Source: Asterias rubens (taxonomy: Eukaryota). From it: a stretch of DNA of 64,000 bases. The stretch is taken from positions 12,276,001-12,340,000 of the forward strand of contig NC_047069.1 in NCBI RefSeq assembly GCF_902459465.1, given 5' to 3'. The notes below the pieces were generated by a model, which saw only the letters and a list, made by a program, of their open reading frames with translations, did not search any database and had not been told where the DNA came from. Below are positions 24,452-39,432 of the stretch, piece by piece (position 1 is the stretch's first letter; each line of letters opens with the position of its first letter). A program made the position numbers and the translations under genes.

Positions 24452-25934
24452 TGCTGCATGCAATGATCCTATCCCCCTAGCCTTACACAATGTATGTAAA
24501 GCTTTTCATGTCTGCTGTTCACAGAGTCATTAGATATGAGCGTCCGATTTCAGATTTTTTTCAGAGCTCCATAATTCAAATCTTGCCTGTGACAAGCTAC
24601 TATTCTCACCAGATTATCATTCCATAGGCGGCACACTATTTATGGCGGTAGGTCGGATATTCCTAAAGAAACTGTCGTTCTCGTTACATATTTCAGCTGT
24701 CAACATATCCTGCAGCCATGGAATATTTATCTTGTGAGATCAGTAGCTTCTTCTAGTTCTGTTGAGTAATGAAGTATACTCAATACCCATAAAGACAAGT
24801 GAGATAAAATAAAAAACAGTTAAATGCATGTTAAACTGTCTCAGGAAGTCTCCTCATTTTGATTCTGGTCTTTTAAAAACAGCTCTGTTCCAGTTAACAT
24901 TTTGAGCTACACGACCTTGTGGATTGTTCCCACAAATTCGAGCCCTGAAGACTAAGGGTATAATCTTTGCAATCACTAAAATTCAGCTGTAGATCTTGGT
25001 CTTCTCAAAATCTGGGTCACAAATTTTTATTCCTATAGCATCTCAGAATGGGGTCCAATTTCATAGAGCTGCTTAAGAACAACAAAGTAGCTAAGTACAA
25101 CAAAAGGATGCTAACGAAAAAATGGTTATCAGCTAAACTACCATGTCACAAGTTGTGACTGGTATCCTGCTTATTAATGCTTAACATTTTTTAGCAATAT
25201 TTTCTGCTTGAAGCAACCCTATGAATTTGGGCCATGTGCTCTTCTGTAGTTCAATCATCTCCACCAGTGTTGTAGCCACGGTGGCCCGAATTTACAATTT
25301 TTAGCCCGGCACTCGGAACAAAATACATTGTGCCGCCAAGCACAGATTTCCCCCAGATTAGTTCAAAATAATGTCCACTGTGCATTGATTTGAGACACGA
25401 TATTAGGTGTATCAAATGTCACCAAGAAAGAACACAGTCGATAAATGTCATTCAACTTATTGCATGGCCCCACGAAATGAACTGTTTGGAAACCTGGCAT
25501 CATGCAGAAAGCTAGCAATTAATCAATGATGACCTTAGGCCTCATAGTTAAAAAAAAACATGAATAATTTTGTTGATCCGCTCGCCCTTGGTAGACTTCG
25601 AACAAATTTTAATTATATAGCCCACCATTAAAATTGGTCTAGCTACAACCCTGATCTTAACGTTGAGATGTACTCGTCCTATTTGGTTTTCTTTGCATCA
25701 CTCATTGATCTCGTTCACTCTTTTTTTTTCGAAATAATCCCGGTTTTTATTTCACTTAGGTTTGATGGATTTAGTACCACTCTGCCGAACCAAACTTGCT
25801 TGACAAGGGGTGAGGAATCCTAGAAAATCCTGAACAATTCTGAAATGCACTGTGTGGCAGGATTCTGATGTCATAACAAATTTTGTAAGGCTCCGTCTAA
25901 ACCAAAGACCCTTTTGTGTTGAGGGATTATACCC

Positions 25935-28900
25935 TCATTGGTTCTGCTCCTTTGAAGAATGTTCAACATCATTCCCAGTTGAAGACGTGTCCATCTCATT
26001 ACCAAGTGTCTCTTCGTCTTCATCGTTCAGAATCGCCTGCCTCTCATCAATCGGCGATGTCTCCATGTCTTCTTGAACGGTGTCTTCAGTAGATGTCTCA
26101 GTGTTCTGGGCAGATGTCACAGTATTTTGGGTAGACATCTCAGTGTCTTGGGTAGAAATCTCAATTTCTTGGGCAGACGTTTCTGTGTTTTTGGTAGGCG
26201 TGTATTTGGCAGACGTCTCTGTGTTTTGGGCGGAGGTCCAAGTGTTTTGGGAAGCCATCTCAGTGAGTTGGGCAGATCTCTCAATGTGTTGGGCAGTCAT
26301 CTCAGTGTCTTCGGTAGATATCTCAGTGTCTTGGGCAAACGTCTCTGTGTTTTTGGCAGATGTTTCTGTGTTCTGGGTCGACGTCTCAGTGTTTTGGGCA
26401 GAGGTCTCAGTGTCTTGGGTAGACGTCTCAATGTATTGGGCAATCAGTTCAGTGTGTTGAGAAGAGCTAGACATCTCAGTGTCTTGGGTACACATCTTAG
26501 TGTCTTGGGCAAACATCTCTGTGTTTTTGGCAGGCGTGTTTTTGGCAGGCGTTTTTTTGGTAGACATTTCTGTGATTTGGGCAGACATCTCAGTGTTTTT
26601 GGCTTTAATCTCAGTGTCTTGGGTAGGTTTTTCATCTGTAGTTCCACCATCATCTTTGTGAGATTCAATTTTGTATTTAGTTTGTCTTGGCCTTGTTAGT
26701 GTGGCTGAATCTGGGAAGCAGGAGAGTTTTGAGGCCAGACCTCTCTTCTTCCGGGGCTGAAAATAGGAAACAATTTTACAAAAAATCAAATATAATCCTG
26801 ATTCCTAGATATTTGTACATTGTTCGCATTTGTGCAAAAAAAATTGTCTGTCTCCTTCAATTAATCCCGATTGAAAAATACAACTGTTTCGCAAGATACT
26901 GGTCGTCGAAGTTGCAAGATAATATTGAAAGAAAAACACCCTTGATTCTCAAACTCTAATTCTGAGGTCTCAAAATCAAATTCTTGGAAAATCACTTCTT
27001 TCTCGAAAACTACGTCACTTCATAGGGAGCCGTTTCTCACAAAGTTTTGTACTATCAACCTCTCCTTATTACTCGTTACCAAGTAAGGTTTTATGCTAAC
27101 ATTTATTTTGAGTAATAACCAATAGTGTCCACTGCATTTAAAGATATAACAATTACCTTGGGTGGTGGGCGTTTGTAGTCGGCATTATGCACCACTTGAT
27201 GTTTAGACAGTGAGCATTTATGAATGAATGTTTTACTACAGCCGGGGTGATCGCAGGCATAGGGTCGTTCACCGTCGTGGTAGTTCCTGATGTGAAGCTC
27301 CAGATATGAAGCCTGTGGGAAAAACAAATCAGATGTCAGGCATGGAATATCTTCTTTGAGAGGGCAAGGTTATTGCAGGGAACATTCTGGAATGATACTT
27401 CAAGGCAGATGCTAAGATTTATCCTAACTAGAATAAAATATATTTCTCCAACCAAATGAAATACGAAGCGCCTGAAATCTTTTTTTCAAAACTTATATTT
27501 TCTCTGGCCATATGAAAAACGGAACGGCGGAAATCTGTTTTCAATAAAGTTTATTTTTAATTAAAAAAAAAATTTTCCCGGCCAGATAAAACGCAGAGCG
27601 CCGGAAAAAATCAGGGGAAAATTTGAAAAAGCCGGAACTACGGCAATAGCCAGAAAACTGGGATCCCTGAAACTAAGTTGTGGAGGTAGTGCTTTCTGCT
27701 CTACCAGCCAGGCTTTCTGATGGATGATACCATAATAATAATTGGGTCTCAGAATTCATCACTGCAATAACATTTCTTTCTGAAAATTTGAATATACTCA
27801 GCGCCTTGAGTACCTTGTTTGGTAGATACGTGCGCTATATAAGACTTTGATATTACTATTACCCAAGCCTACATCCGCATGGACTGTAAAAGGGGTAGCC
27901 CCATTTCAGCGCCAGGAGTAGGTGGCAACGACCCCTGGCAAAAATAAATTGTAGCCCACACCTTGAAGTGGCCTCCAGGCCTTGTGTGTCTGGCGACTTG
28001 CATAATTTTCTTTTTTAAATAACAAAAAAACTGTGTGTTTGATTACCAGTACTGGTAAGCAATTATTGTCTCCTAAGATAAAAATTATTTTCATGATATT
28101 TTTTTTTTTACTAATTTCTCAAAACCAACAGCACCTCAGCAAGTAATATTTTAATCATTCTCTTTAGAATCGTTGGAGGCGGCATTTACCTTGAGGTATG
28201 ATCGGTCACAGTTCTCTCTCGGACAGGTCAGAACTTCCTTAATCTGCTCATGGGATTTTACATGGGCACGAAGCTGTGGATACAAATTCAATTCGATTAA
28301 ATCAACATTCATGAATACCCCAGACAGTTTCTCTACTAAAGACCAGCTGGAGCTGTTTATAACAAGCTGGCTTCCACGTGTCGGGCGTGCCACATTATCA
28401 CGCGGAACGCAATTCATAGCTATAGTAACAGTGCGTAATCTAAGCGTGCGCGTAATCTAATTGCGCACATACACACAACCCACGCGCATCAAACAGATTC
28501 TTCACAAAGTTTTGGAAAAAATATTTCAAACCTCATGTATGCGCCGTAGCACCCTGTAAACCCTTACAAAGTGCTAAATGATTGGTTCTCAGGATTCATC
28601 ACTGCAATAACCTTTCTGAAAGTTTGTATATACTCAGAACCTTGAACACCTTGTTTGGTAGATACGTGCGCTATATAAGACTCTGATATTATTATTATTA
28701 TTATCATCCTGGTAAAACTTCACAGAGTATAGGAGTATATTCATACCTTGTGCTTCTTGTAGTAGACCTTCCCACATGTTTCACACTTAAATTCTGAGAA
28801 AGAAGAAAAAGAAGAGACATGATTTTTGTTTTTCCTCATAATAAAGCTCCATAAAAACTTTAACAAGTAAATAATAACTAGTCTGTAGACAAAATCATAA

Positions 28901-30714
28901 CAAAGCAAATCTGATTGCAGCCGAAGGCTAAATTAAATGAAATTTTCATTATTAAAATCTACACTTTTAAGTGCCAAAGCAAGAAACACAAATATTCAAA
29001 AATACATAATAAAATAATACAATCGGCCTGTTAGATAATGCAAAATTTGTTAAATAAATTTGGGAGACGAAACAGTCAAAATAAATACACCTAAAAAAGT
29101 TATGCAATTAATAAAATAAGAGCAATATAAAATAAAAACCAAACAACTTGTTAAGCATTTAAAATACCAATGCACACAAATATTGAAAAAGTTTCAAGCA
29201 TATCATAATCAAACTCAAAACATGTAAATTTACTGTATTGCAAATAATACACGAAGCTCACAGTCAATATATCAAATATAAGGCAAAATGTACACAAAAA
29301 GAAATTTAAACTGGCAAAATGACTAGCCATTTGAATACATGTATTATAAAACCAGACAATTATTCAAAATAATTATTAGCATAAAATAATTACATGGTAA
29401 CGAGCAATGGAGAGCTGTTGTTAGTAGTTGTTAACTGTTGTACGGCTCCCACTGAGGTAAAGTAGCTTTTGAGAAAGAGGTAAATCCTCACTTGAATATT
29501 AAAATACTTCAGTCCTGAAACCTTTTTAAGGCATCCGAAAGCACACAAATTTGTGCAACAAGGGTGATTTTTTCTTTCATTATTCTCTTTCAACTTCGAT
29601 GAATTTTTTTTTCGTCTGTTTTGTTATTTTTTGCATGTTGGGATCCTCCTAGTTAGCTTTTTGCAAAGTAGCCCATCAGGCTTAAACACTGCATTTTGCT
29701 TGCCCCAGAAAAATATGTATATATATATACCTGTCATATGCTCAACAGAGAGATGTTTCCGCAGCCCACTCCATGTAGTAAAGTGAATATTACAACCTTC
29801 CTTGTCACATGTGTAACCTGGGTGGACGAAGTTTGTAATGGTCAATAATTTGGATAAATCACAATACCTGTTAATACATGTAAACATGTACATGTATGTT
29901 AATTCTGCATCAGGGATAAAGAATATATTATTGGGGTTATGCCCTTGCACCTAGTACACAAGACACACCGTATAAAGTAAAAAACACGTACTACAATACC
30001 TTGCAGTAACAGTTAAAAGCACTTCACGTGTTTGTAACAAATTCAATCGCTACCCACTGTTTTCATACAGAACTGCAAGTAAATTGAGTGTTATGAAGTA
30101 TGATCTGGTGTCTATACAATGCCTTCCTTAAAAGACCTGTGTGGAGAAGCGACCCCTATGAGGGAAGTATACATTTGTACTGGAATATTTCAAAGAGCAC
30201 CAATGCAACGACAAGAGGGCATGAGGGAAATTTAAAATGTCGGGCCAGGCATTCTACTTGTCAACAATCCACACTCTCTCAATCTGTCAGTAAGTTAATT
30301 CAATTCAATTCTTTATTGTGTTTAAAAAGACCCTAAATGAAAAATGTACATGTCTAAGATTGATAAAAGATCAGAAACAGTACAATAAAACTGTTAAACA
30401 TATCAAGATATAAAAAAAAAAGGCATTTGGATAACATTGACATTAAACAGGGCAGTAAAACAAATAGAAATCCTCACCTTTGTGTATTTTCATATGGCTT
30501 TTTAACTTGCTGGGAAGCACGAAACTGGCCTCACAACCTTCATGTTCACATCTATAAAGACAGAGGAGAAAAAACACAGTTGAAATTTAAACCGAGAGAG
30601 TAGCAAAAACCTATTCTAGAAACAAAAAGCCTTGCAGTCAAGCCTTGCAGTCAATTGCCAATACACACATGGCTCAAATTTGTTTATTTATTGGTATATT
30701 ATTATTATTATTTA

Positions 30715-30751
<37 letters not shown>

Positions 30752-33700
30752 GTATAACAAAATGACCAGAAGGAGAAGTGGAAAGGGTCAAAGTACATCT
30801 TAAAAATAGCAACAATAACATATTAAAATGCAATGAAGTGTAAAAAGTACAAAATTTACAAAACACTACATAACAAAATTACATTTATTTCAGCAATTAT
30901 GAAATGACAAATTACAAATCTCACTAGTTCAATGGCAAAATGCAAAGAGGGGGATCAACAAAACGACAGGACTTGTAGCTCAGAATCTTCAGTGGACTGT
31001 GATTTTATTACAAGACTAGAATCAAGATGTGTGCGCCTTGAGCACCTCATTTTTGTGGATTTTGGCGCCCTTTCTTTCATATTATTCTTATTATTAAAAT
31101 TCGAACAGACTACACGTATAATCAAATTAGTGCACATATATATGTGTAGTCCACATACAAGAACCCAGTTGCATTTACATGAACCACTAAGAGAAGGGGT
31201 CTGCCCCGGTGTTTCTGGCAGTGGCTGCTGAATGCGCCGCAGCACCTTGTAACCCCTCAAAAAGTGTTCCATAAATTGTCTCATAATTAACTTTGGTTTT
31301 TACCCGTACACCGATGTATGTTAGCACTGTTTACTCAGTACTTTCCCGCGTCCTGTGAACAAATACCACAGGCATGTGAACAATTTCACAGGACTCGGGA
31401 CAGTACAGTGCTAACACACATCGGTGTATGGGTAAAAACCAAAATTAATATTCTTTATCCCCGATGCAAATTTAACATCTCTTACGTCTCATAATTAAAA
31501 AACTTTAAACCCTGTCTGAAAATACATTCAATATAATGATAAGCGCATCAAGATGCCTGTCTGGTAGTTCTTTATCACACCCCTAAGGCCTATCAAAGCA
31601 CTCGCTATTTTATCCTGCAAAGTATGTGGAGCTACGTTTTGAAGGATGAGACATACCTTTATAGCAATAGGTAAAGTTTACGAGGTGCTGTGGGGCAAAA
31701 TGCAGGCAATCAGACACTTGGTAATTGTCATAGACCAGTCTTCTCACTTGGTGTATCTCAACATATGGATAAAATAACTAACCTGTGAAAATTTGAGCTC
31801 AATTTGTCATCGAAGTTGCGAGATAATAATGAAAAAAAAAACACCCTTGTCACATGAAGTTGTGTGCTTTCAGATGCTTGATTTCGAGACCTCAAAATCT
31901 AATTCTGACGCCTCTGAGGTCTCCCCATTACTCGTTACCAAGTAAGGTTTCATGCTACTAATTATTTTGAGTAATTACCAATAGTGTCCACTGCCTTTAA
32001 ATAAAGCACAATATAAAAACTAGTTATTTTTATAATATATTTACCTGAATGGTTTGATGTTGGTGTGAAGGTAGCTGTGCACTGTGAGATGCTGACGCTT
32101 CTTAAAGGTTTTCTCACATCCTTCATGATTGCACTGAAGAGAAAATCAGAACTCAGTATCCATAAGAATTGTCCTGAGAATTTTTCTTATCGACTGAGTG
32201 AGGCCACCTTACTCCACAGTCGTAGAACTATTGTCATGTTGAGACTTAAAGGATTTGGGTACTTTTTCAAAATGTCCGTAGATTTACATTAAACTTACAC
32301 AGTTTGAAGATAATGATAGTAGAAAGCTTCCCTGAAAATATTACGTGCTGAGGTATTGTAGTTTTTGAGAAATGAGTAAAACAATGTCATAAAAATACGT
32401 TTGTAAATGTTTAAAATAATTTTCGTCTCATGAGACGAAAATTATTTTCATGACATTTGTTTAACTCATTTCCCAAAAACTACAGCACCTCAGCACGTAA
32501 TATTTTCAGGGAAGCTTTCTACTATCATTATCTTCAAACTGTGTAAGTTTAGTGTAAATCTGTGGACATTGTGTTTTTTGTCCTACAAAAGTTACATAGA
32601 CCCTTTAAGTGAAGAAGAATTGAACTCTGGTAAACAGTTAAGCGTGAGTGTTACCCTAGGATTGCGTGTGGTGCGTTTTACAAGAAATAAGAGTGAGCCC
32701 TTGGAATGACAGATGATATGGGCCGCTAGCTGGTATGTAAACAACTATTGGGGAATTCTAAAGATAGTGGGAAAATTGTCCTTACACTAATCACAGTCCG
32801 CTTACTTGTGGAGTAAAAAATTTGGTTCTGCAAAATGACGGACAGTGTTAGTTCACAAAGTAAAAAAAACCACAATTTTGAGGGACATTCGTGTGAATCA
32901 GTTATCACCATTTAAGACTTTACTGTTAAATCTTTGGTTTATTTGTATCCAAACTAAAAATCACAATGGCGTTGGTCTAAATGCACATGACCTATGACAT
33001 AATGGAAGTTAGACTAGCGCTGTAGTCTCTTGTCAACACAACATTTACCTACCTTAAATACTCTCTCGCGATGGATTCTGCGGATGTGTTTCTTTAGAGT
33101 ATCAACTATGCTGAATGTTTTGTTACAGCCATCCTCCATACACCTGGGCGCGAGATAAAAGAATAGAGAGTTAGAATAATCATGTCTTAAGAAAGGGTCT
33201 ATGTACTTTTTTTTCTATACACAAAACACAATGTCCACAGATTTACATTACCGGTAAACTTGCACAGTTTAAAGAAAATGATAGTAGAAAGCTTCCCTTG
33301 AAATGTTACTTACTGAGGTGCTGTAGGTTTTGAGAAATGAGTAAAACAATGTCACAAAAATGTCACAGTAATAACCAGTTATGGTACATGTATGTTATGG
33401 TACAATATCATAACTGGTTGGTACGTTTTTACATGCTAAAATAATTTTCGTCTCACCGAGACGAATATTATTTTGTGACTTATTTTACTCACTTCTCAAA
33501 AACTACAGCACTTCAGTAAGTAACATTTGAAGGGAAGCTTTCTTCTTTGATTATCTTCAAACCGTGTAAGTTTATTGTACATGTAAATCTGTGGACTTTT
33601 TGAAAAAGTACCCGAATGCTTTAATGTGGCCATTGCTCATACAGCATGACAAATGACAAACTACTAGATATAACCAATAATTTGTCAGTTTGTGTGTAAT

Positions 33701-36700
33701 ATTTTAAAAAGTGAGATTTGTTTACAAAGTTACAATTTTTGGAGAATCCCATTTGATCAGTAGATACAAGTCAGTGCTTGAAATTAACACTGGAAATGAA
33801 CACAGGGCCTGCCTGAGACCAGTGATTTTAGTGTCGGGCCAGTAAACTCATTACTGGGCAAGCCTGATGGTCTTGTGTTTTTAAATTGATTATTAAAAGC
33901 ATATAAGGCAATAATAATAGGCTAAATCATCTTGTAATATTTTTTTTTCAATAATAATAATTTGGGGGATAATCAACCTTACTCGCAGCTAAGAGCTGAA
34001 TTGCGAAGGACGCGGCTACAACGTGTTCGAGAAGCAGGCATGCAAGGGCGCCTCTTGCTGCCAGCCACATCAACCCATTATGACCACGGAGCACAGCCAA
34101 GATCAAAAGTGTTTGATTTTTCCCGAGGGAGGAAAACCGGATGGTCTGGAAAACCCTCGTGGCACAGCAGAGAACCAACGCACAACTTAATGGGAATCGA
34201 ACCGGGGTCATCTTGGTGAGAGACGAGCGCTTTACGCACAAGCCAACCATGCCACCCCGGTAAAGGTAGAATACGAGTCTGATCCAGTTGTCTTTCAATT
34301 CTTTTCAGTATCAGAGTACTGCACAAGAAGCCAAAACAGATAAATTCTTGTCCACTAACAATTTTGAGCTACGTACAAGCCCTATGGTCTTGTGTATATT
34401 TCCCCAATGCAGTACATGTCATGGTTAAAGCCCTGTATAGAACTTTATCACGTTGTCACCATTTTGGTCATGTGTTCCCTGTTTCCATTAACAGTAAAGA
34501 ATACTAACATTCATTATGCGCATGGCACCAGACTACATGTATTATTTCGTCCAGCCTCAGTTTGGTTACAATGAGTTGGAACGAAACAAAATTAAGATGG
34601 CCACACCATGATAAAGGTCTATTGAGGGCTTTTTAAGTAAGTCTTTGTAACTCTGTAACTCACACAAAATCTTTCTTGTCGGAATGTGTTGACAAGTGTC
34701 TTTGAAGGTGGCCTTGCCGTGTGTAGTTCTTGGTACAGCCTTCATGGGTGCATATAAACTCTCTCTGTCAAAAATAATTTTGAACACTATTAAAGGCAGT
34801 GGACACTATTGGTAATTACTCAAAATAATTATTAGCATAAAACCTTACTTGGTAAGGAGTAATGGGGAGCTGCTGATTGCATAAAATTGTGAGAAACGTC
34901 TCCCTCTGAAGTAACGTAATTTTTGAGAGAGAAGTAATTTTCCACAAATTTGATTTCAAGACCTCAGAATTAGATTTGAGGTCTCGAAACCAACCATCTG
35001 AAAGCACTTTCATATGTATTACCTCGCAACTTCGACGACCAACTCAGCTCAAATTGTCAGGTGTGTTATTTTATGCATATTACATGTAGCTTAGATGTAT
35101 CCACCAAGTGAGAAGACTGGTCTTTGAAAATTACCAATAGTGTCTTTAAAGGCACAGTCATCATTTTGTTTTTGTCAAAGTCAATCATGGAGGAAGGAAG
35201 AGAAGGAGCTCGAACGACCCGCAAAACCGCAGAGTAACAAAAGAATACCCTGACAATGCCCCTGTCTGACCAGTGGAAAAAGATAGGAGACCTCCAGCTG
35301 GACGGCCGATTAACGAGCAGGATTAGATCTCTTTGTACAGAAGGTGTGGTACCGCCAGACTGCGCCGTTGCCTTCGTGCTAAGTTGAATAATTGGAGACA
35401 AGAATTGTGAACATACACGTTTCCATTTACCGTTTGTGGTGTTTCACGGAAACATCATGGCATATTTTTACATTTTTTGTGACTTTCGCTAGCTAGCGGT
35501 GGTTCAAAACTTGGGTACTAGCACACGAGGGTGGTTGGTATTCAATTGTGTTTTTTCAAATTTGGGGGGGTGGAAGTGTACACAATTTTTATTGTTTTTT
35601 CTGTATTACATCCATACGTCATACGACACCATAGTTGAGTGAAGAACCAAGTGCGCACGCGCCAACTCACATATGCCCAGTTGCCCATTGTTTGTATAAG
35701 GTATGTGGGTGATTACGAGGTGTCGTTAAACTTTTGAAGTCCCTTCTTCGAACTCCTTCTCTTCCTTCCTCCATGAGTCAATGCATAGGCAAGAAAGACA
35801 CAATAAAAGTAATATTTTATAATGTCAGTCGAATACAGTGAAAACTTAGAACTTGCTAAGAAAAACAGTGTCTCTGGCCATTTTTCAACAAGTTGCTGCA
35901 GGAAATATTTTCAGCAAAAAATACAAAATGAGTTGAGTTCCTTCCGAATTAAATGAAGAAAGAAAGTAAACAAAATTAAATACATTTCTTAATTAACATT
36001 GTTTTTACTTGAAGAGGCTAGAAATAAGACTCCCCAATTAATTCAATATATATTGATTGGAGTATTTAAATAAACAAATAAAAATAATATTGATTAGGTT
36101 TAAAATATAAATTTGAAAAAAATATACATATAGAAAGTTGAGTAAAAATCTGAGTGATATACACTTTTTACAGCAGTTAACTTTTCAACAAGAACAAGCG
36201 CTGTACACGCGGCCGAACTGACGAGCCGCGACTGAGTTGGACTAAACCATTTTGTAGAAGGGGTGTTACGCGGCAGCGCACTGTCCGTTTACGATGCCCG
36301 CCGTTCATGCATATAGCACACACGCACTGCCGCGTAACACCCTTTTTACAGAATGGTTTAGTCCAACTCCGTTGTGGCTCGGCAGTTTGGCAAGCAAGTA
36401 GGCTGGTGCCGCGTGTACAGCGCTTGGTGACCAATTGACCAAAAAATAAAGCGTTGAGCATATTGAGAAGTCAAAAAACGTGTGATGCGGCAGAAAAACA
36501 ACAGTGAGTACCGAGCAGAAAACTAAATTTTTTGAAGATGTTTTTTTAATTTAACTCAACAAACAGGCCATACAAGCACCATGAATGTATATTGAGTGTG
36601 ATGGGAAAGTTTCGTGTGTGGAGTACAAAGGAAATGTTAGTAAATGATGGCGAACGGTCGTAAAACTTTCATCTATCAACGGCGATTTTAAAAACGTATA

Positions 36701-37315
36701 GCGTTAACTTAAGGAGGTCCAAAATATTAGACCCACCTATAAGGCTCACGGGGAGCCTTATAATTATATAGTTTCTAGAACTTAGAAGTAGCTCATCAGT
36801 AGCTGTAGCTCCATGACCATGATGCCGTAACCCATGGCCCATATTTCATAATAAAGACTAACAATTATATTAGCAATATTTTTATAATTTTATAAATAAT
36901 TAAACTTTAAAAAGCACACAACTTGCTAGTCGGAAAACTTAACCCTCCTGCTGTCGGCAGGAGGGTTACGTTAATCGCAACTAACAACTTGCTTAATTAA
37001 TTAATCAAGCAGTATTTTCTGCTAACTAAATCTAAACAATTGAAATTGGGCCCATACAGTGAACAGTCCTTCCTACTCCTCTAGAATTATATGATATTCG
37101 TTTCGCGTTCGTCTATCGTCTGCTTCAGTTTCCAGCTAGTAGTACTAGTAGTAGTAATTAACAAATAATAATAAATAATTTCTGTCGGAAATAGACCCCT
37201 ATGGGTTGCACGCTGTACTTACTTTACCATCGTGTTTTGCGAGATGTTCGCGTAGTTGCCATTTCTTCTTAAATGACCCCTCACAGCCTTGTAAAGTACA
37301 CTGAAAAATCTTCAT
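25935..37315 (-). CDS. GTF3A: Transcription factor IIIA (nine C2H2 fingers plus long repeat tail, ~547 aa)
   Basis: Coding exons 37315-37223, 34764-34664, 33143-33053, 32133-32045, 30551-30478, 29817-29731, 28793-28747, 28273-28190, 27312-27157 and 26756-25935 are all in phase. There are nine fingers, mostly C-x4-C, with finger 7 C-x2-C. TFIIIA-type features are finger 6 [10 protein letters not shown], finger 8 [10 protein letters not shown] and the post-finger motif [12 protein letters not shown]. Fingers 1-6 each occupy their own exon, as in vertebrate TFIIIA. Confidence 0.93.
26082..26615 (-). repeat. Coding minisatellite (21-bp unit, ~26 units) in the last GTF3A exon
   Basis: It encodes TE(T/M/I)S(A/T)(Q/K/E)(N/D) heptads: 22 heptads, three 5-aa units ([15 protein letters not shown]) and one 9-aa unit. 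Confidence 0.95.
30692..30751. repeat. (ATT)n microsatellite
   Basis: Read directly, with one interruption. Confidence 0.9.
32246..32608. mobile_element. MITE family D (near-perfect foldback, TTAA-flanked)
   Basis: The arms pair across almost the whole length around AAAATAATTTTCGTCTCATGAGACGAAAATTATTTT. A second copy lies inverted at ~33187-33623, on the other side of a GTF3A exon. Confidence 0.85.
33187..33623. mobile_element. MITE family D, second copy
   Basis: Homologous to 32246-32608 in the opposite orientation, with a ~50-bp insertion. Confidence 0.8.
33945..34258 (-). mobile_element. tRNA-derived SINE (second family)
   Basis: The minus strand starts GGGGTGGCATGGTTGGCTTG...GGTTCGATTCCC and ends in a (TTA)n tail. 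Confidence 0.75.
34792..35150 (+). mobile_element. MITE family A in a GTF3A intron
   Basis: It starts TTAAAGGCAGTGGACACTATTGGTAATT and ends ATAGTGTCTTTAA. That TTAA is shared with the next element. Confidence 0.85.
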
Positions 37316-39432
37316 GGTACCTACAAATAGCACGAGTATCAGTATTTACACAGGATAAATAATGACAAATATGCCTTCTTATTTAAACGTTCACATGCAG
37401 GGATACAATTTTGCAAAATTTTGCTGTCAAACATTTCGCTTCGACGATCGTGCACTTGTGTGAGAGAGAATAGACAGCAAATCTCCGTGTAATGAGTGAG
37501 AGGTCAAAGGTACATTTGTAAGGATCCGTACATTCGGTCAGGCTGGTGGCGCCCTTCACGAGCCTCAAAGTTAAGACATCAGATTTTCAGGCTTCGGGTG
37601 TCTTGAGCTCCATGATACTTTTCTGCTACCTCACCTGAAAAACAGATTTTACTCTCTTTTTACGGTCCTTGAAAGCAAAAAAGCGAATGGACACTTTCGG
37701 CCGCCTAAGTAAAATTTGTTTTTCCGGTATCTTAAAGGAGAATAAAAAGGAGATGGCCACTATTCGGCCGCTAGAAAGCAAAGTTACATTTGTACAAAAC
37801 GTTCGATCTGCCTTTCTCAATATTCGGATTAAAGCAGATGGCCACTTTTTGTTTGCCAGCATAAAAGGAGATTAAGTAAAACCTGCTTTTCTGGTAACAT
37901 AAAGTAGAACAGTAGATCTACTTTTCTGCTATTATTTCTATAACCAGAAAAAGCAGATGGCCACTTTTCGTCCTCATCATACGTGATTTGTTCTCAGGCA
38001 GGAGGTACACATGTATATGATACAAGTATTGGGCAGAAGCCTACGACAGCTTTCGATAGTACGAAGTATTTTTGAAAAACATTTTACCTCAAAGCTATGT
38101 GGTTTTGTAAAAAGGCATGTTTCATCATGCTCAAAAGTTTAAACCTGATTTTCCATTTTTTTGATTTATGGACTTCTTATTATTTGTTTCGCTTAGCTTG
38201 TTAATTAAAATTACGTTACGGTTTAATGGTGATTAACTTGGTTATTTGCGTGTATAATAATTCTTTATTATCTAATTTTTGTTTGGGGCTAAATCAAAAA
38301 GCTAAACATTGTTTTGATGTATTAAAATACTTATTTTTCTGCCAGTTTTGTGCGCATTTCCCAAGCCAATTAGGACCAACATTAAAGCCTCAATTTATCC
38401 AGTCGCCTCAAAAGTTCAAGCTCAAAACCCCTTGTTCGAATATTGTTATTATAATAATTTACACATTCTATTATTGGACGACCCCCAATATAATAGTTAT
38501 TATTCAAAAGTAACTGTGGTTTAAAAAAAATGATAATAAAACTGTTTTGTGCATTCTCTCTCTCAGTAAAGTGAACATCTTAGTAAAGTAATCATGCTTC
38601 TGCAATATGTTGTTTTAAACTTTGTATAAAAAAGGGTTTAAAAAGTACTCTTGTAGTTTTTCTTTAAAAAAACCACTCATTTCCAATGGGCGTTTAGGAG
38701 CAGCTGTGATACAAAACTTTAAAAGTCATTGACAAAATTAACGTTCAACTTTAAAACGTTTGTTTATTTGATTATTCCATCAAATGCAATTCAATGCACA
38801 AAACTTACAGAATGGGAATTCAATCATACTTCCTTCACCTGCAATTTTGTTTAACATATGACAACAATTGAGCCACAATAAATGAATGTTTTCAGCAAAT
38901 TTACTCTGGAATAGTTAAACCTAAATTATATTGCACATTATAAACAGTATACATAAAATGTAAAATAGCCATCACCAATTACAAAAAAACAAACCCATAA
39001 TGTTATATACAGTAAAGTAGAATGAAAAGTAACAAATATTTTACAATTCTTAACAAAGAGCATTTGAGACCCACTTAAAATCTCTACTAGTCATACTTTT
39101 GTAGGAATGCAATTTTACTTTCTAAAACTGTATAGCTTTGTCATGCCAAATTTGACAAAATGACATTTTAAATTGTCTAATTTATAAAATAAACAAGTAC
39201 TTACCATAAACCGCTTATGTTTGTAACTAAATTTAAGTGTGGGTGGTGGTTCTCGCAGGTTTGAAATAAATACCTAACATTTATTATCCATAAAAACCAC
39301 TAAATTTTGAGCACAGCCATGACAGCTTTAGACCACAGCGGATACAAACAGCTTGTACCAAATTTCCAATGCGTCCATTCAGGGTCGCATTGGACATTTG
39401 GTACAAGACTTGACCGTGTTCCAGTTGAGATA

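Follow-up and report, generated by a model that had tools for sequence, protein, structure and literature searches.

Transcription factor IIIA (TFIIIA) is the founding member of the zinc-finger proteins; it is conserved and serves both the synthesis and the storage of 5S rRNA. In humans it is a protein of about 42 kDa with nine fingers, whose C-terminal region is a disease hotspot and which is destabilised by an aberrant C-terminal extension of 64 residues (PMC13345412). The same source, citing earlier work, describes the C-terminal region of vertebrate TFIIIA as required for activation of RNA polymerase III (Pol III) (PMC13345412). The window considered here, a stretch of 64,000 nucleotides from the sea star Asterias rubens (contig NC_047069.1, positions 12,276,001 to 12,340,000, with coordinates below counted from its first letter), contains on its minus strand a gene that we take, from its sequence, to be the TFIIIA (GTF3A) orthologue, and whose last exon runs on beyond the fingers into an array of 21-bp repeats. 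The new analysis indicates, with a probability that we put at roughly 0.6, that this tail is a tolerated, lineage-specific coding minisatellite in the TFIIIA C-terminus, and that any function it has would come from its bulk properties and not from a heptad code of the kind known from the C-terminal domain (CTD) of RNA polymerase II (Pol II).

The comparison with vertebrate TFIIIA rests on a gene model assembled from stop-to-stop frames with C2H2 signatures, which are lined up on the minus strand between 37.3 kb and 27.1 kb. Specifically, the model describes a single-copy TFIIIA gene of 10 exons with canonical AG/GT sites and a 1644-nt frame for 547 amino acids (62.7 kDa). Its spliced product contains exactly nine C2H2 fingers (regular expression C-x2-5-C-x12-H-x3-5-H), which occupy residues 1-274 and carry a net charge of +23. 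The fingers are spaced as C-x4-C...H-x3-H, except that fingers 3, 6 and 8 have H-x4-H and finger 7 has C-x2-C; the H-x4-H of Xenopus TFIIIA fingers 3 and 6 is confirmed in the sequences of the structural matches and agrees with the model, and for fingers 7-9 the model was set beside the spacing that we presume for Xenopus. When exons 1-6 were searched singly against all sequences of the Protein Data Bank (PDB), Xenopus TFIIIA (1tf6/1tf3) ranked between first and fourth for each of them, and first for exons 1 and 6. The best-matching stretch was the cognate finger for exons 1, 2, 3 and 5 and, within the constructs of fingers 4-6, for exon 4, whereas exon 6 matched finger 3 instead. As such, the nine-finger TFIIIA named by a preliminary description of this DNA, made from its letters alone, is borne out. 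In the search with exon 8, generic zinc-finger proteins dominate, and there is no vertebrate structure for fingers 7-9. Against the 417.6-Mb assembly, exon 8 finds itself at an E value of 1e-32 and next a generic finger at 7.6e-8, and this lack of a second strong genomic copy agrees with the one TFIIIA gene per genome reported for most eukaryotes (PMC3701560).

The sea-star gene thus shares with vertebrate TFIIIA (Xenopus laevis; PDB 1TF6, 1TF3, 1UN6) the nine C2H2 fingers, their spacing pattern and a colinear similarity, along with roughly one finger per exon and a single gene copy. A basic segment with a KRxLASxL motif after finger 9 is a presumed further likeness, in which the sea-star LASKLSCF is set against what we take to be the Xenopus counterpart, ...KRSLASRLTGY...; a PDB search with the motif segment returned no solved chain that spans this region. 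In contrast to the human protein, the sea-star model is larger by a 186-residue acidic array and a 43-residue acidic end, both of which follow the motif.

This additional mass is encoded by the last exon, exon 9. From its acceptor at 26756, the minus-strand frame runs through 273 codons before it meets a TGA at 25937-25935, beginning with a basic segment of 44 residues that includes LASKLSCF and continuing through the array into the acidic end. According to Tandem Repeats Finder, a 21-bp unit is repeated at 26091-26537 in 21.3 copies with 69% matches and 6% indels. The program also detects higher-order periodicity, at 63 and 120 bp, and neighbouring pieces of 15 bp and 21 bp that extend up to 26603. 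Parsed into units, the array consists of a lead TQD, 22 heptads, four pentads and one nonad. The heptad consensus is TEMSAQN, with T or M at position 3, A or T at position 5 and N or D at position 7; the pentads read TPAKN (twice), TPTKN and TVQED, and the nonad reads TEMSSSSQH. All three prolines of the array sit in the three TP-containing pentads. The earlier count of about 26 units of 5, 7 or 9 residues over 178 residues, with the motif at 26738-26715 and some 260 residues beyond it, was right to within a few residues. Searches of the assembly at the DNA and the protein level each found this array at a single place, and the array has the attributes by which a coding minisatellite is defined, namely tandem units of 10-100 bp, a length divisible by three and a position in an expressed open reading frame.

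The RNA data provide the evidence for this expression. Parts of exon 9 are contained in 14 public runs, of which four from four studies (X9, X1, X2 and X14) were mapped onto positions 25300-31000. The canonical acceptor ttttcag/CCC at 26756 matches the donor AAG/gtaatt at 27157 in phase 0. A 1983-nt contig from X9 comprises 29731-29815, a 47-nt stretch fitting exon 7a, 28189-28273, 27157-27311 and 25731-26756, without a single gap and with seven differing letters in the last piece; it is a spliced mRNA in which exon 8 is joined to 26756 and the full array is read through into the 3' untranslated region (3'UTR). Exon 9 is therefore spliced to exon 8 at the position that had been predicted, the mRNA runs uninterrupted through the array, and the frame is continuous from the fingers to the TGA. 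A second spliced contig was found in X1. Contigs from X1, X2 and X14 span exon 9 from 26756-26758 down to 25556-25977, and further contigs reach 25300. The contig indels listed all lie in the 3'UTR and the joints listed all lie in introns, so that among those listed for the four runs none falls within 25935-26756. In runs of organism A from at least seven studies, 76-100% of the sampled array words were found.

Exact array words also turned up under other labels, with 44-91% of them present in runs X14 and X22 (organism C), X16 and X17 (organism D) and X23 and X24 (marine metagenome), and the X14 contig is about 99.4% identical across 1.2 kb. These runs probably represent the same species under another label or environmental DNA, rather than independent evidence of conservation across species.

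The sequence of the repeat units shows little sign of being held constant. Measured against their consensus, the 22 heptads differ at 85 places, 17 of them synonymous and 68 non-synonymous, where neutral divergence with the observed transition bias would yield 22.4% synonymous changes, 73.9% non-synonymous changes and 3.7% stops; the resulting non-synonymous to synonymous ratio is about 1.2, and the unit variation is not concentrated at third codon positions. Among the single-nucleotide polymorphisms (SNPs) in the RNA contigs, all four within the array alter an amino acid (I>V, T>S, S>F and T>M), and a fifth, in the acidic end, is synonymous. At position 26016, all four mapped runs carry A and the assembly carries G (synonymous, GAC to GAT), the reference being the rarer allele. 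The SNP patterns reveal at least three haplotypes besides the reference, and the array has an identical length in all of them, although contigs may conceal rare length variants; the suggestion that its length may differ between alleles thus found no support. In runs of organism B, a related species, 8-13% of whole-exon words were present versus 4% of array words, a rough comparison between two different word samples, and the exon flanks appear from these sequences to be better conserved there than the array.

The reading frame tells a partly different story. The preliminary description had taken the fact that all changes in unit length keep the frame as a sign of selection on the protein. The frame is indeed kept; neutral divergence would leave the coding frame free of stops with a probability of 0.047, and the +1 frame of the same strand contains three stops. 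However, duplications of whole 21-bp units preserve the frame automatically, so that only some two to three sub-unit indels of 6 bp each are informative. These are the pentad type, with its common ACG CCT, and the nonad; as the pentads share ACG CCT, they probably have a single origin. One antisense frame, moreover, is fully open: a 208-residue open reading frame at 26073-26699 on the plus strand, made of VLGRRLS-type units, crosses the entire array without a stop. In all likelihood the repeat unit itself gives rise to this frame, which cautions against taking open frames in minisatellites as evidence of coding. With this antisense frame and a probability of only 0.047, the argument from open frame to selection was dropped as strong evidence, and what speaks for frame maintenance is genuine but of modest weight. 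Taken together, these data point to maintenance of the frame, and perhaps of the length, but not of the unit sequence.

Relatives of the tail were sought in several ways. An exhaustive HMMER search with the exon 9 protein against 1.84 billion representative sequences gave 47 weak matches (best E value 3e-19), confined to the repeat region. None of the 47 contains a zinc finger or a LAS-L motif, and the protein itself was not among them, which makes the search weak evidence on orthologous tails. Several matches carry similar heptads (WTEMFAQ, TETFSQT, TEESTKV) in otherwise unrelated proteins. Examples such as P0008, P0046, P0036 and P0011 share 21-bp/7-residue units of the TE(T/M)xxQx type with the sea-star protein, but neither zinc fingers nor common flanks, and because the likeness is limited to the repeats (E values from 1e-19 to 1e-3), it points to recurrent, convergent low-complexity units rather than to membership of a family. 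No Pfam family was matched by the exon 9 protein. A word-indexed search with exon residues 1-45 returned no candidate, under a length filter of 150-478 residues that would miss long-tailed orthologues, and a scan of metagenome contigs with exon 9 returned nothing. The same scan with exon 8 yielded 14 loci, all of which are generic poly-zinc-finger genes and were rejected as TFIIIA. In the literature, nothing was found that describes echinoderm TFIIIA tails. As far as the sequences go, the array appears to be lineage-specific.

In composition, the tail is as Ser/Thr-rich and acidic as had been stated. The array has 35% Ser+Thr, 18% Asp+Glu and 16% Gln+Asn, an isoelectric point of 4.2 and a net charge of -22, and exon 9 as a whole reaches -28 as opposed to the +23 of the finger domain. 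It contains eight S/T-Q, seven S/T-x-x-D/E (CK2-like) and 15 D/E-x-S/T-hydrophobic (Plk-like) motifs. The S/T-Q motifs form a cluster of the type associated with ATM/ATR targets, in the sense of at least three in 100 residues, with four of the eight in 186 residues falling within exon residues 90-127, because the unit consensus itself reads S-(A/T)-Q. The only S/T-P sites of the array are the three T-P-x-K pentads, each a full consensus site for cyclin-dependent kinases (CDK).

The label "CTD-like" does not survive the comparison. The array and the Pol II CTD (YSPTSPS) are alike in being tandem, Ser/Thr-rich units of seven residues at the C-terminus of a transcription protein. In contrast to the CTD, none of the 22 sea-star heptads contains S-P, T-P, Tyr or any other aromatic position, the units are degenerate and drift neutrally, and the array is strongly acidic prior to any phosphorylation and seemingly lineage-specific. 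A conserved S-P heptad under purifying selection, by which a CTD-like repeat would be known, is not found here, and by its sequence the array is similar to the CTD in unit length only. Another analogy, though not a homology, is offered by the acidic tails of HMGB1, UBF and nucleoplasmin-type proteins, which likewise are long, acidic, low-complexity C-terminal appendages on a basic nucleic-acid-binding domain, but which consist of Asp/Glu runs instead of Thr/Ser/Gln-rich heptads.

Structure prediction gives two answers for the tail. Run on the single sequence, AlphaFold2 draws helices at exon residues 46-66, 76-96, 99-184 (predicted local distance difference test score, pLDDT, 83-91) and 194-220; these are interrupted by the proline pentads, and the two ends are disordered. 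Overall, this prediction without an alignment has a mean pLDDT of 62 and a predicted template modelling score (pTM) of 0.25. ESMFold2, run on the array as a homodimer, gives a score of 0.00, which is no argument either way on self-association, and a pLDDT of 29-30 for the very segment that AlphaFold2 draws as helical. On whether the tail is disordered, as had been claimed, the two predictors disagree.

Several explanations compete for these observations. According to one, the array would be a selected, phosphorylatable heptad platform, an analogue of the Pol II CTD that tunes 5S transcription or the storage of 5S RNA in ribonucleoproteins or condensates of oocytes. The abundance of Ser and Thr, the acidity, the Plk-like, CK2-like and S/T-Q motifs, the three CDK sites, the kept frame and the uniform length are what such a platform would show. 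The motif counts, however, follow automatically from a unit rich in T, S, E and Q, and the residues on which a code would be written are unconserved, change at a near-neutral ratio and in every array SNP, lack S-P, T-P and Tyr in all heptads and appear less conserved than the flanks in the related species, so that this explanation is unlikely, if still the strongest of the alternatives. A structured rod, or a coiled-coil-like interaction module of long alpha-helices punctuated by proline pentads, would agree with the AlphaFold2 prediction, whose helices break at the TP pentads including TPTKN, and would suit a true period of seven residues, which matches two helical turns. Single-sequence AlphaFold2 is prone to drawing helices on repeats rich in E, Q, A and M; the low pTM, the missing alignment and the ESMFold2 result speak against the rod as well, as do a- and d-type positions filled by Thr, Ser, Ala and Gln instead of hydrophobic residues and a Thr+Ser content that disfavours helix. 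We consider such a rod improbable. That the array is not translated as modelled, whether because an alternative end leaves it in the 3'UTR, because the assembly is at fault or because it belongs to a rare isoform, is harder still to maintain. The contigs of X1, X2 and X14 that end at the acceptor do suggest that more than one sequence precedes it in RNA, unspliced pre-mRNA being one possibility, and the protein libraries searched did not yield the window's own protein; but in the X9 contig exon 8 passes into 26756 in phase 0, motif and array lie in a single frame that ends at the stop, the array is recovered gap-free from independent runs, and no joint among those listed interrupts the exon. 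This last explanation is accordingly given very little credence.

The tolerated minisatellite itself has to contend with several of the same data. No stop occurs in 186 codons, an outcome with a probability of about 0.05 if the array were neutral, the two to three sub-unit indels are all of 6 bp, and the four haplotypes agree in length; a kept frame and a uniform length suggest some constraint, which a purely passive insertion would not need. In addition, the three TP pentads are full CDK sites, and the AlphaFold2 model, with its helix at 99-184 and with breaks that coincide with the proline pentads, hints that the tail is structured and not featureless. Read in the most ambitious way, these points would make the array a functional module of the echinoderm lineage, in which acidic helical heptads are hinged at the three T-P-x-K sites and charge or phosphorylation switches TFIIIA between binding of 5S genes, storage of 5S RNA and release during oocyte growth and meiotic maturation. 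This is a long shot.

The available data are more readily compatible with a model in which the array grew by slippage or unequal exchange of the 21-bp unit in a C-terminal tail that was already unstructured and tolerant, at a place downstream of the activation motif, the correspondence of which to Xenopus is presumed. The individual residues of the units would since drift near-neutrally, and selection, if any, would retain only the open frame and a bulk character that is hydrophilic, acidic and rich in hydroxyl groups. Since unit residues are near-neutral, any function of the tolerated minisatellite would arise from such bulk properties. A candidate function, for which the likeness to HMGB1- and UBF-type tails (+23 versus -28) forms the basis, is that the acidic appendage might offset the charge of the fingers and so weaken or tune their binding to DNA or 5S RNA. 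Alternatively, the array may act as a spacer that keeps the acidic end away from the fingers. The features of the gene are collected in Table 1.

Table 1 Features of the Asterias rubens TFIIIA gene, in order of transcription, with positions counted in the window
Feature	Position	Strand	Evidence or remark
Exon 1, finger 1, ATG at 37315	37223..37315	-	Modelled start; top PDB match Xenopus TFIIIA finger 1 (1tf6 12-39, 1tf3 1-30)
Exon 2, finger 2	34664..34764	-	AG/GT sites; best 1tf6 stretch 42-73, cognate finger 2
Exon 3, finger 3 (H-x4-H)	33053..33143	-	1tf6 75-101, cognate finger 3
Exon 4, finger 4	32045..32133	-	Cognate finger 4 in the 4-6 constructs 1un6 and 2j7j (4-32); in 1tf6 best stretch is finger 2
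Exon 5, finger 5	30478..30551	-	1tf6 137-159, 1un6 34-56, cognate finger 5
Exon 6, finger 6 (H-x4-H)	29731..29817	-	TFIIIA top PDB match, best stretch finger 3; in spliced contigs X9 and X1
Exon 7a, first half of finger 7 (C-x2-C)	28747..28793	-	Fits 47-nt gap, X9 contig positions 670-718
Exon 7b, second half of finger 7 and first half of finger 8	28190..28273	-	Spliced contigs X9 and X1
Exon 8, second half of finger 8, finger 9, basic linker	27157..27312	-	Joined to 26756 in X9 contig
Exon 9, coding part, 273 aa + TGA (25937-25935)	25935..26756	-	Gap-free contigs X9, X1, X2, X14
LASKLSCF motif in basic segment	26715..26738	-	Presumed equivalent of vertebrate C-terminal activation motif
Coding minisatellite, 186 aa, exon residues 45-230	26067..26624	-	Parsed by hand, checked by script
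Two TPAKN pentads, T-P-x-K CDK consensus	26523..26552	-	AlphaFold2 helix break here
TPTKN pentad, third T-P-x-K site	26187..26201	-	AlphaFold2 helix break here
Non-repetitive acidic C-terminal end, 43 aa, net -11, 30% Asp+Glu	25938..26066	-	Follows the array
3'UTR, lower bound (at least about 635 nt)	25300..25934	-	RNA contigs run on past the stop to the edge of the region examined

Further observations concern the remainder of the gene. At the 5' end, an acceptor (tttgtag/GTACC) lies 5 nt ahead of the modelled ATG, which makes an additional upstream 5'UTR exon possible, and a minimal upstream ATG-TGA stands at about 37390-37398 on the minus strand, in presumed 5'UTR some 80 nt before the modelled start. 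Three intron stretches (26828-27209, 27592-28164 and 29311-29692) have a summed word depth of 10^4-10^6, many short contigs and joints between copies; they are transcribed interspersed repeats of very high copy number. The intron upstream of exon 8 contains 1.9 copies of a 56-bp unit (27452-27557), and simple repeats, which the mapping of the RNA runs passed over, occur in introns at 30688-30760 and 28678-28715; one of them can be read in one frame as consecutive Asn codons.

If the tail is merely tolerated ballast, it would remain a curiosity of sea-star genome annotation. Nevertheless, a natural TFIIIA with 230 extra acidic residues directly after its presumed activation motif shows how much that tail can tolerate, and it constitutes a natural test case for the question whether acidic appendages modulate fingers that bind DNA and RNA. 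Beyond TFIIIA, the gene provides an RNA-verified example of a near-neutral coding minisatellite within an essential gene.

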